A stretch of 63,988 nt of DNA, filler included, from Reticulomyxa filosa (lineage: Eukaryota; Protista; Foraminifera), in NCBI GenBank assembly GCA_000512085.1. It is 14 parts of 14 records of this genome, joined end to end, with 100 filler letters (N's around TTAATTAATTAA, not from the genome) between each part and the next. Parts side by side here need not be neighbours in the genome. Positions count along the whole stretch, not along the records: positions 57,989 to 62,244 come from ASPP01006174.1; 13 more parts are not named here. One strand, given 5' to 3'. Below, one piece after another: positions 57,989 through 62,244 of this stretch. The translations under genes and the position numbers were made by a program. The notes below the pieces were generated by a model. The model saw only the letters and a list, made by a program, of their open reading frames with translations. It did not search any database and was not told the DNA's origin. Every line of letters starts with the position of its first letter. Within the stretch, counting starts at the first letter, position 1.

Positions 57989-58021
<33 letters not shown>

Positions 58022-58075
58022 GTTTATTGTTATTATTATTATTGTTATTGTTTTTGTTGTCACTTATTATTGTTC

Positions 58076-58612
58076 TCATACTTTGGCGCGCAGCCACTTT
58101 CCACCAATAAATTTTTGCTTTGCTACCATTTGCTTGGCTGATTCGAAAAAAGGGATGCACAATGGCTGCAGTTGACTTGGGAAGGATGGCTTACTGGCGA
58201 AACGAGTGTTTCCAAAAGCTGAGGCATTTGCTGCTGTTGATGTTGTTGCTGTTGTTGCTGCCTTTGGTGTGGCCGTCGTCGATTTGTCACTACCTTCCGC
58301 TTGTGCTTGCGATTGACCGCGCTTTATTATTTTATCGATTGCTTTAAATCCTGTCACCGAATCGTCCAACACTTGGTACACTTCAATCAGGCCTCGAAAT
58401 TTACCAGTCTTTGGGAAAAAGTGAGACACTGGCAGCGTGTTGTTCGAGTTCTTAAACTTCTTCTTCTCACCTTCCTTCACTTCTGTTGCTATCACCGTTA
58501 TCGTTGTATCCACCGCGTCTTTCACTTGTGCACCTATGGCATCCAGAGTTGACCCAACTGCATCTAATGTTGAGCCCACTGCATTCCTTGCTCCGGCTAG
58601 AGCTTGCCACAT
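58076..58612 (-). CDS. Hypothetical protein, N-terminal part
   Basis: MWQALAGARN(AVGSTLD)x2..., T/A-rich linker, likely introns; continues beyond the contig. Confidence 0.55.
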   Translation of the reverse strand: MWQALAGARNAVGSTLDAVGSTLDAIGAQVKDAVDTTITVIATEVKEGEKKKFKNSNNTLPVSHFFPKTGKFRGLIEVYQVLDDSVTGFKAIDKIIKRGQSQAQAEGSDKSTTATPKAATTATTSTAANASAFGNTRFASKPSFPSQLQPLCIPFFESAKQMVAKQKFIGGKWLRAKV

Positions 58613-59143: not shown

Positions 59144-60735
59144 ATGCCAGGAACCTTTCAAAAACCGTTGTGTGTGTCAACAACTTTAAACAGCCCGGAA
59201 AGGGCAAGCACTACCTCTAGATCAATGTCCCCTGAATTTATTTTTGGTACGAAGAGCGTGGGTGCCCCTTCTCCTCCGGAGAAGCGAACTGGGAAACCAC
59301 GATCTCAATCCTTTTTGATTCATCGTCCCGAATTTTCAGCAAAAGGCCTGCCGTTGAGTAAAACTCCCAAGCCGGACCGAAAGCCACGATATTCGATGTT
59401 ATCGTTCCAGGAATCCTCCGAAAACATCAAGACGAGGCCAATCAAGTCAACCCCTGCAAAAGCTGAAAGCCAAGAAATTGTCGAGCTGTCGCTGAATGAC
59501 ATATCTAAACTCCAAGAACTGCGAGAAATTTTCAAAGAGTTTACTAGTGCACTGTCTGTGCAAGAGCAGCTGCTAACAAAAAATTTTACACCGTAGAAGC
59601 AAATACGAATAAGAGCCTGTTGATTGACAAGCATGGATTACTTTGTCGCATCCGACAAATTGGATTGGCAACCGGAAAGCGATTGGAGGAGCTCCAAAAC
59701 GAGCAAAACTTGGCCATGGAAAAGATGAAAGAAATTTTGGAGTTTGAGACAAATGCCAAATCCCAACATAAAAAAGCATTGGAGTTACAAATAGAAGTGG
59801 ACAAAGAGATACAAATCATTCAAGAGAAACAAGCAGTTGTGGATGCCGAATTGGCAAAAGCGCAGCCTGCCATTTGTGAGGCCAAAAATGCTGTTGGGAG
59901 CACAAGTTAAGGTAATGTGAGTTGTTTCTTTGTGTTTTCATTATTATTACATTGTTATTATTTTTAAAAAATAAAAAAAATAAAAAAAGAGTGCGTATAC
60001 ATATTTTGCAAGACCCACTCACTCAATAAAACGTACGCAAATATATACGTATATACAAAAAAAAAAAAAAAAAGCAAAAACAGATTGGAATGAATTGCGC
60101 GCATATAAAAATCCCAAGGATGTATTGAAAACAGTAATGACAGTGGCTGTTGGTAACGAACATTTATTTGTTTATACGATGTGCCCTTTTTTTTCTGTTT
60201 TTTATTTTTTTTAAAAAAAACAACTAAAAATAAAAAAAAAATGATGAATAAAGCATTGGTAAAAAATGACTCCAAAATATTGTGTTTGGGGACAAAAGAC
60301 AAAAAATCGACTCATCCCCCTGGTCAAGACGACCATTGGGCTGAAATCAAGCGCGAAATAAATTATGACTTGGTCAAAAAGCTAATGAGTTTTTTGGATA
60401 GCAATGCTGCAGAAGATCTGGATCCCAAAGTTGTCACTTTGATCAAAGAAATACTAGAAAATATCACTTATGAACAAGCTGTCAATGCATCCAAAGTTGC
60501 TGGGCCTGTGTTTTTGTGGATCAAGTCCGTTCTTTTTTACTCCGAACTGCTTGTTGAAATTGTTCCTTTGAAAGACCATATTTGGGAACTCAAAGAGCGA
60601 TGGAAAGACAAAAAAGATGAAATGGCTTTGCTCAAAAGTCAGGAGATCGAATTTGCTGACAAAATACAAAAGTGCCGCGGAGAAATGCTTGAAATGACTG
60701 GATATAAACAAAGTGGGGGGTATTACTTTTTATGA
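59144..60735 (+). CDS. Stand-alone dynein stalk plus microtubule-binding-domain protein (~440 aa); introns 59906-60074 and 60153-60253; 1-nt frameshift near 59580
   Basis: IQEKQAVVDAELAKAQPAICEAKNAVGS-TTKTDWNELRAYKNPKDVLKTVM...W..IK...YEQAVNASKVAGPVFLWIKSVLFYSELL..IVPL aligns with dynein heavy chain CC1-MTBD-CC2. Confidence 0.85.
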
Positions 60736-61171: not shown

Positions 61172-62244
61172 ATGTATTTCCTGGAGAAATTGACACATCT
61201 CAAAGTGCTGAAGCTTTGGTATTATGGATTTGAATTGCCAGTAGAGCGTTACAAGCCGATGATAGAAGTTTTCTACTACTGTGGCAAAAGGATCCGTGCA
61301 AATTTTTTATTTTTTTTTTGCAAATTGTTCATGAACTCTTTTTTTGAAAAGAAAACAATCCACGCACATTAAAACTCAGTCTAACTTTGTAATCTTCGCG
61401 CATCAATCAGACAAATCAAAAAGTGTCAAAATCACTTTTGATTGTGATATTAACGTGAACAAATGTTCCATTCAAATAATCGACAACAGTTATTACTGTT
61501 TAGTCCTGCCAATTAAGCAAGGTTCGTTTTCTTGGATCACTTTACTTTTTTTATTTTTTTTAAAAAAAAAAAAAAAGAAATGTTCGGTTGTTGATTGGGT
61601 GACACTTGAATCGCACCCAATCAACAAAAGATATGTATAGTGACGAAAATGACGATTGGCCAACAAGTGACGAGTTGATAGTCTCAAAGAATCAGGTAAT
61701 CGAATGCCGCTTTTGTGGAAATGTGATATCGGACAATCGACGAAAGAGTCAAGAAGAAAAAGGGGACACACACGTGATCGAAAAGATTTATCCATTGCCT
61801 TCTGAGTATTGGCTGGAATTGAGCGATTTGTGGTTTTGTTGTGCGCAGCATCAAATTGAATTTTCTCCAACAGCAATCCACGCAAAAGCCAACTGTCTGT
61901 TAACAGGTCAGTTGCATATGATTTTCCATCCGAACAATATCCTTGCCCAGTCGGTCGTCGTTCGTCCCGCTCAACAACAGTCACACACCACACATTCCAT
62001 TTCCACGTGGTCTGACACGCTCATTCATGCGTCACACAAAGACGAAAGAGATGTCTTTGACTGTCTTTGCAGCCGATGTGGAGTTACTTTGGGACAATAC
62101 GTTTCCAATGCCCACTTGCACAATGACACCGTCTCACCACTTGTCGAAGCTATGGACGTCGATATCGCAATTGAAGAAAAGGATGAAGAAAACGACAATA
62201 ATAACAATAGCAATAATAACAATAATAATAATAATAATAATAAT
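61172..62244 (+). CDS. UBE3D/Ipa1-like (HECT_2) E3 ligase, partial
   Basis: IECRFCGNVI; IYPLPSEYWLELSDLWFC; LCSRCGVTLG. Start codon uncertain. Confidence 0.75.

Follow-up and report, generated by a model that had tools for sequence, protein, structure and literature searches.

Positions 59144 to 60735 of the window, by which the whole analysed stretch of 63,988 nucleotides (nt) from Reticulomyxa filosa, a foraminiferan and a giant amoeba of fresh water, is meant, hold a real and conserved gene for a dynein stalk without a motor. By its sequence the stalk is closest to that of cytoplasmic dynein-1, and by its features the product is not a dynein heavy chain. The gene is spliced and under selection, its product carries the dynein stalk fold (coiled coil CC1, microtubule-binding domain (MTBD), coiled coil CC2), and it belongs to a family of short proteins in which both arms of the stalk have invariant lengths. 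A first-pass annotation had described a small spliced gene for the stalk and the MTBD only. The stand-alone, spliced and selected stalk gene was borne out by relatives, by ratios of nonsynonymous to synonymous change (dN/dS), by a tree and by structure models. The absence of an AAA ring also stood, but the word "only" proved too narrow, as conserved non-dynein elements flank both arms. The family itself, a TRIM-like helix, a terminal hairpin, the invariant arm lengths and a lost arginine in MTBD helix 6 go beyond that annotation.

Stalk identity, family and selection

The window gene was searched exon by exon, while its relatives P0001, P0003 and P0006 were used for whole-protein searches and folds. 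For the CC1 part of exon 1 (59599-59907) and the MTBD-CC2 part of exon 3 (60256-60732), the top matches were stalk/MTBD chains of cytoplasmic dynein, with E-values of 0.0018 and 0.00018, respectively. The intact relatives pass the PF12777 cut-off of 24 bits (P0001 29.5, P0006 30.8, P0007 55.6); single window exons and the mis-spliced deposited model fall under it. AAA Pfam domains had zero matches in the window exons or full-length relatives, and neither RING nor B-box Pfam matches were obtained for window exons or relatives. The N-terminal tail and linker of dynein, more than 3000 amino acids (aa) long, have no place in a window protein of about 440 aa or in complete relatives of 523-729 aa. 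The AAA4 end and the RW motif, which leads from CC2 into AAA5, are absent from the families A-D described below and were found in most long hits.

The family profile ranked cytoplasmic dynein-1 first (E 3.7e-37), followed by dynein-2 (2.4e-27) and the axonemal dyneins (1.7e-22 or weaker). An axonemal origin was rejected on this ranking, despite an insert at the position of the axonemal flap.

In an unbiased search of 1.84 billion representatives, short proteins outranked every full-length dynein. Family A, to which the window gene belongs, comprises P0001-P0009, P0017, P0034 and P0057. Its members end in a common motif, 10-12 residues past a conserved Gly. They also have one layout, in which a disordered and frequently basic tail precedes a short TRIM-like helix, CC1-MTBD-CC2 follows, and a conserved hairpin closes the protein; an AAA ring is missing. 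Around them (L005, L006, L008, L010) the neighbouring genes are unrelated and the stop is conserved. In families B and D the stalk is preceded by a full TRIM-type helix, and family C consists of partial stalks.

The tree of 67 rows was midpoint-rooted and omits two double-stalk proteins, four long-branch dyneins and most fragments; a quick tree of 141 rows was also made. Family A stood on one side of a branch supported at 100/99, and families A-D grouped together at 100/100 with zero long dyneins inside. As the root is a midpoint and the set contained no known foraminiferan full-length DHC1, the members of this branch may have that dynein as their common ancestor. More than one stalk excision across the motor-less groups is possible. 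We infer that the metagenomic relatives are foraminiferan.

A profile search with alignment A3 returned, among its best 8000 candidates, just three proteins, all already in the set, and a metagenome locus scan with alignment A5 gave no confirmed locus. A literature search, with most subscription journals outside its range, returned no description of a natural stalk-only family, which is apparently undescribed.

Against L001, the closest relative of the window gene, dN/dS was 0.085 for the CC1 part of exon 1, 0.042 for exon 2 and 0.087 for exon 3, and exon 3 gave 0.149 against L002, a second R. filosa paralog; these values are rough, since synonymous sites are near saturation. The neutral decay that had been named as a possible refutation was not seen (dN/dS 0.04-0.15). 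Constraint is among the strongest in the MTBD exons, exon 2 being 88% identical to L001. On either side of a frame break in exon 1, the proportion of nonsynonymous differences (pN) against a relative was 0.40 in the helix before it and 0.31 in the motif after it, with that of synonymous differences (pS) above 0.9 for both; given this constraint, the N-terminal part and the stalk behave as one gene.

Several side observations concern related proteins. Family B (P0013, P0153 (L011), P0016) has, by eye and without Pfam support, a SAM-like N-terminus, followed by a full TRIM-type helix and the stalk. Family D (P0036, P0041 (L012), P0107, P0035, P0031) has a long basic tail, a full TRIM-type helix, an acidic linker and the stalk. 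In P0015, P0020, P0027, P0032, P0071 and P0111, partial stalks are joined to short LxxG(Y/F)xR motifs, which in some cases lie within the MTBD loop. Two copies are present in P0027, and all six proteins may be shuffled gene fragments. Outside the branch or unplaced are the apparently motor-less P0029 and P0043 (one a tandem double, one a single stalk) and a mostly oomycete Atlas cluster that pairs Impact_N with PF12777, likewise apparently motor-less.

Gene model and frame break

The gene lies on a 4256-nt piece identical to contig ASPP01006174.1 of assembly GCA_000512085.1. The deposited hypothetical protein at this place, RFI_07906 (ETO29220.1, UniRef X6NSF0), bears the automatic label "dynein heavy chain coiled coil stalk domain-containing"; from label and model, the locus was called by a program, and no sign of a prior study of RFI_07906 was found. 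Its model starts at 59225 and contains two wrong splices: a 26-nt intron across the frame break and a mis-spliced intron 1. The former was rejected as it has 42% GC and deletes conserved helix residues, and the latter as it adds about 24 foreign residues. An alternative intron-1 donor at 59912 leaves an in-frame stop and was also discarded.

The corrected model relies on L001, a 1524-nt intronless contig from JGI, 62-68% identical to the window gene, which looks like a transcript. Because this intronless sequence aligns, both introns, the start and the stop are confirmed. The two in-frame GT-AG introns of the first-pass annotation were upheld: both junctions match L001 base for base (the junction codons were compared, and L001 is continuous there), and the intron-2 acceptor is at the same position in L002. 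Residues 1-13 and the KPRSQSF motif of the window protein also align with L001, for which reason the start at 59144 is favoured over the deposited one. The stop at 60733-60735 falls 10 residues past the conserved Gly, as against 10-12 residues in relatives. A tail or AAA modules would not fit into the flanks, as had been supposed, since on the plus strand the upstream flank has no stop-free stretch of at least 40 codons and the downstream flank has one, of 66 codons. L001 itself continues beyond the stop into sequence resembling an untranslated region.

The spliced length of 1322 nt is one short of a multiple of three; supposing one missing base, the protein has about 440 aa. The break noted earlier near 59580 is real in the assembled sequence; by homology, the frame has to shift by -1 somewhere from about 59578 to 59593, where an A6-T4 run lies. 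The break is not conserved: P0006, P0007, P0008 and P0034 lack it, as does the reading frame ahead of P0005, and the residues that relatives show at this position are K-F (or K-W, K-V). Repeats were rejected as its cause, as only A/T-rich simple repeats are present. No sequence with a human, toxin-like or viral look was noticed either. In the same assembly, L002 likewise lacks a base, at a different A6 run, and its conserved C-terminus is hidden as a result. L001 contains two 1-nt breaks that compensate each other, at runs of A8 and A7 (483-491 and 567-573); they are separated by about 80 nt and lie in the part homologous to the window break. All four breaks are compatible with errors at A runs. 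From these comparisons, the window break is probably a homopolymer under-call in the assembly; that it is a recent lesion is unlikely, and that it is a programmed shift is considerably less likely still.

Two accounts of the locus build on the break. A recent breakage that left the window copy a defective allele or pseudogene, within a real family, would agree with the break in the assembly and the existence of a second paralog, and the run search listed no reads, although absence is not thereby shown. Yet a single lesion in 440 codons, the low dN/dS, the intact splice sites and a break at an A6 run like that in L002 make this account very improbable. Even more improbable is a programmed -1 ribosomal frameshift yielding a short tail-plus-helix product besides the full one. 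Positions 59581-59587 do match a canonical slippery pattern, with A AAT TTT as the in-frame reading and -1 as the shift needed, and L001 has A AAA AAC with its -1 break 4-5 codons beyond. However, five relatives are continuous at the site, the window and L001 sites are non-homologous, L001 also requires a +1 shift 80 nt later, and folding downstream is unremarkable (z -0.61, -1.38).

Structure, microtubule binding and alternative readings

The model of P0006 (residues 172-598; mean predicted local distance difference test, pLDDT, 78.9; predicted template modelling score, pTM, 0.56) contains, in order, a strand and helix (E8-12, H16-52), a disordered linker, a strand-helix motif (E157-161, H162-170), CC1, the MTBD, CC2 and a terminal hairpin. 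Compared with the mouse stalk 5ayh, it gave Z 21.2 and a root-mean-square deviation (rmsd) of 2.9 over 237 residues; the MTBD model of P0001 gave Z 17.2 and rmsd 1.7. In every family-A member holding both landmarks, the motif Gly is 68 residues from the CC1 proline, and the CC2 proline is 45 residues from the terminal Gly. These arms are free of indels though members are about 30% identical, whereas linker and H2-H3 loop lengths differ by hundreds of residues. From this contrast we infer a single cap to which the ends of both arms are anchored and which holds their registry fixed.

A profile of the N-terminal module built from families A, B and D matched the TRIM3 coiled coil (E 1.5e-05) and Brat (0.04), and the TRIM23-like and NCOA4 clusters appeared at 0.90, as a lead only. 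The TRIM-type helix is cut to about 30 residues in family A.

At the surface that meets tubulin, H1 of the window gene keeps one Lys and the Glu-x-Arg, H3 keeps the Trp and Lys-Arg, and the Arg of H6 is replaced by Asn. Across the family, H1 is acidic in several members and H3 stays basic. Either the tail (+11 to +34) or the H2-H3 insert (+16 to +71) carries basic charge; inserts of 123-383 aa, with net charge up to +71, occur in P0005 (L006), P0007 (L008) and P0008 (L007).

In dynein, microtubule affinity is switched when CC1 and CC2 slide against each other by half a heptad, and the registry can be held by a foreign scaffold (10.1101/590786); the axonemal flap touches the next protofilament (10.1101/590786). 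The strand-helix motif, the terminal hairpin and the N-terminal strand and helix may pack as a small cap that replaces AAA4 and the buttress. By analogy with the SRS scaffold of engineered SRS-MTBD chimeras, such a cap would fix the CC1/CC2 registry, and since registry sets affinity and a scaffold can fix registry, a stalk capped in this way would bind without ATP at a set affinity. The basic tail or the basic H2-H3 insert would add binding to the acidic tails of tubulin. Its place on reticulopodial microtubules could then be that of a static microtubule-associated protein (MAP), tether or spacer, and competition with dynein for the dynein site would be possible. A natural fixed-registry stalk serving as an ATP-independent microtubule-binding protein or tether is the reading towards which we lean.

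Several observations weigh against it. The helix-6 Arg, which contacts tubulin according to a simulation study (PMC13191692), is Asn in the window subgroup and variable across the family, and one of two H1 lysines is lost. The pTM of the model was 0.56, and the cap and its fixed registry, whether alpha or beta+, are putative. The run search listed no transcript for the window copy either, with the same limit as for reads, and the closest relative, L001, has its own two breaks nearby.

The changed contacts could also mean that the stalk/MTBD fold was reused as a rigid spacer or interaction arm, for instance in a dynein regulator or cargo scaffold, with no tubulin binding via H1, H3 or H6. The lost arginine and the acidic H1 of several members agree with this, as do the MTBD-like folds of axonemal chains that are not dynein and have no assigned role (9fqr_Xl, Z 11.9; 9e5c_2e, Z 7.7). 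The constraint on the MTBD exons (exon 2 88% identical) and the basic H3 speak against it. Alpha2/beta2 tubulins of Retaria, foraminifera included, have changed surfaces (PMC5455982), which may or may not explain the altered contacts. A spacer without tubulin binding is rather unlikely. TRIM coiled coils form antiparallel dimers. As a special case of the fixed-registry stalk, the TRIM-like helix might pair two chains antiparallel, so that a dimer presents two MTBDs and cross-links microtubules. The TRIM3, Brat and TRIM23-like/NCOA4 matches of the N-terminal module favour this, and the microtubule bundles of Reticulomyxa splay (PMC2113829); against it, the TRIM signal comes mainly from the sister groups B and D, the helix of family A has only about 30 residues, and the structure models cover single chains. 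A cross-linker of this kind is given a low probability. Least probable of all is that the gene encodes part of a split or trans-spliced dynein heavy chain, to be reassembled with motor pieces from other loci. DHC1 is split in Basidiomycota and trans-spliced in Giardia (PMC5100056, PMC4540427), but the reported splits keep the stalk attached to AAA modules, both arms of the window protein end in conserved non-dynein motifs, CC2 stops before the RW motif to AAA5, and L001 runs on past its stop as described.

Beyond the fixed-registry stalk, we put forward a wider proposal only tentatively and with more doubt than belief: that foraminifera built a class of microtubule-binding proteins from a dynein-1 stalk and a TRIM-derived cap, registry-locked and tuned to retarian tubulins, which cross-link or gate the reticulopodial microtubules that serve very fast two-way transport, and that the MTBD is a mobile domain put to new use in several lineages, Toxoplasma ICMAP2 being one case. 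The dynein stalk is usually treated as inseparable from the motor, and motor-free versions are mainly laboratory constructs. With a selected natural family of fixed arm lengths, the model of registry and affinity could be put to the test on evolved sequences. For foraminiferan reticulopodia, where data on MAPs and motors are lacking (PMC5455982), the family offers named candidates for organisers of the microtubules; the proteins are small, and intact members are directly expressible.

Features of the locus and comparison with known systems

Table 1. Features of the motor-less stalk gene, in window positions.
Feature	Positions	Strand	Evidence or remark
Exon 1: start codon and low-complexity S/T/P/K-rich tail	59144..59470	+	109 aa, net charge +11; alignment with L001
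Exon 1: conserved short strand and amphipathic helix, a shortened TRIM/B-box-type coiled-coil element	59471..59587	+	conserved in L001, P0006, P0034, P0007, P0008
A6-T4 run with 1-nt frame break, -1 shift needed	59578..59587	+	frame analysis
Exon 1: strand-helix motif ending in invariant Gly	59620..59679	+	68% identical to L001; Gly invariant in family alignment
Exon 1: stalk coiled coil CC1, conserved proline at 59866-59868	59683..59905	+	dynein match; dN/dS 0.085
Intron 1, 169 nt, GT-AG, 22% GC	59906..60074	+	junction as in L001
Exon 2: MTBD helices H1-H2	60075..60152	+	88% identical to L001; dN/dS 0.042
Intron 2, 101 nt, GT-AG, 19% GC	60153..60253	+	junction as in L001; acceptor position shared with L002
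Exon 3: MTBD H3-H6, CC2 (proline at 60565-60567), terminal motif, stop	60254..60735	+	dynein match; dN/dS 0.087 against L001, 0.149 against L002
Insertion of ~17-20 aa between MTBD H2 and H3, at the axonemal-dynein flap position	60271..60336	+	alignment; low model confidence (residues 64-75)
Asn in MTBD helix 6, in place of the tubulin-contacting Arg of cytoplasmic dynein-1	60484..60486	+	alignment to mouse and Dictyostelium chains; family survey
Family-specific C-terminal motif: CC2 end and predicted beta hairpin, not found in dynein	60673..60735	+	near-invariant columns; E419-421, E424-426 in P0006 model

The neighbours of the gene are as first annotated, with a divergent gene starting 531 nt upstream and a UBE3D-like gene (PF09814, E 6.5e-16) starting 436 nt downstream. 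The former (58017-58612, minus strand) has no Pfam match and begins with short repeats of the A-V-G-S-T-L-D type. The latter (61172-62244, plus strand) has introns at about 61296-61379 and 61522-61630, and its open frame reaches an Asn repeat at the contig end, while the deposited model stops at 62100. A frame break in this gene was considered and rejected, as the acceptor at 61630 opens the frame. The second paralog (L002:93-563) is deposited as "cytoplasmic dynein" (ETO21959.1); downstream of it, at about 930-1275 on the plus strand, L002 holds an uncalled frame that by eye is DAD1/OST2-like.

By both sequence and structure, the family is best matched by the stalk/MTBD of cytoplasmic dynein-1 (PF12777; 5ayh, 3err, 3vkh), with which it shares the CC1-MTBD-CC2 fold, both stalk prolines, the Glu-x-Arg of H1, the Trp of H3 and the Ser of H6. 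In contrast to that dynein, the window protein lacks the tail, linker, AAA1-6 and buttress (about 440 against more than 4000 aa), has non-dynein elements on both arms, a replaced helix-6 Arg and an H2-H3 insert. The SRS-MTBD chimeras (3err, 3j1t; 10.1101/590786) are likewise motor-free stalks, with arms held by a foreign scaffold that sets the registry and hence the affinity. The family differs in being natural and under selection, and its clamp is a proposed one and much smaller.

In the fold search, MTBD-like regions were found in three chains, 9fqr_Xl, 9ya2_L and 9e5c_2e, whose size or residue numbering is at odds with a dynein heavy chain. In the two axonemal chains these regions are residues 1335-1507 (9fqr Xl) and 136-427 (9e5c 2e), with the Z-scores given above; 9fqr chain Xl may be EFCAB5, a guess from length only. 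Chain L of 9ya2, which sits on intraconoidal microtubule 1 of Toxoplasma, shows an MTBD-like fold in a non-motor protein (Z 10.6, rmsd 2.9, 123 residues), whereas identity is 11%, no long stalk was aligned and there is no evidence of shared origin. From its size (162 of 1678 aa) and residue numbering, this chain is probably ICMAP2, which binds the microtubule as a dimer and whose deletion separates the two intraconoidal microtubules; the text of the ICMAP2 paper mentions no dynein likeness (PMC12819142). Such unremarked precedents of a motor-free MTBD fold lower the claim of a wholly new category and raise the odds of a microtubule role.

The split DHC1 of Basidiomycota and the trans-spliced dyneins of Giardia (PMC5100056, PMC4540427) also place part of a heavy chain on a separate gene, but their pieces rebuild a motor and leave the stalk with its AAA modules. 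With TRIM/B-box coiled coils (TRIM3 8amr, Brat 6j9r, NCOA4/ARA70) the family shares the helix pattern and the strand-helix motif that follows, though it has neither RING nor B-box and, in family A, a helix of about 30 residues. DNAHX is, like the family, dynein-derived and without motor activity; it keeps the full heavy chain and is reported to lose microtubule binding via insertions in the stalk, which is the opposite reduction (PMC11785096).
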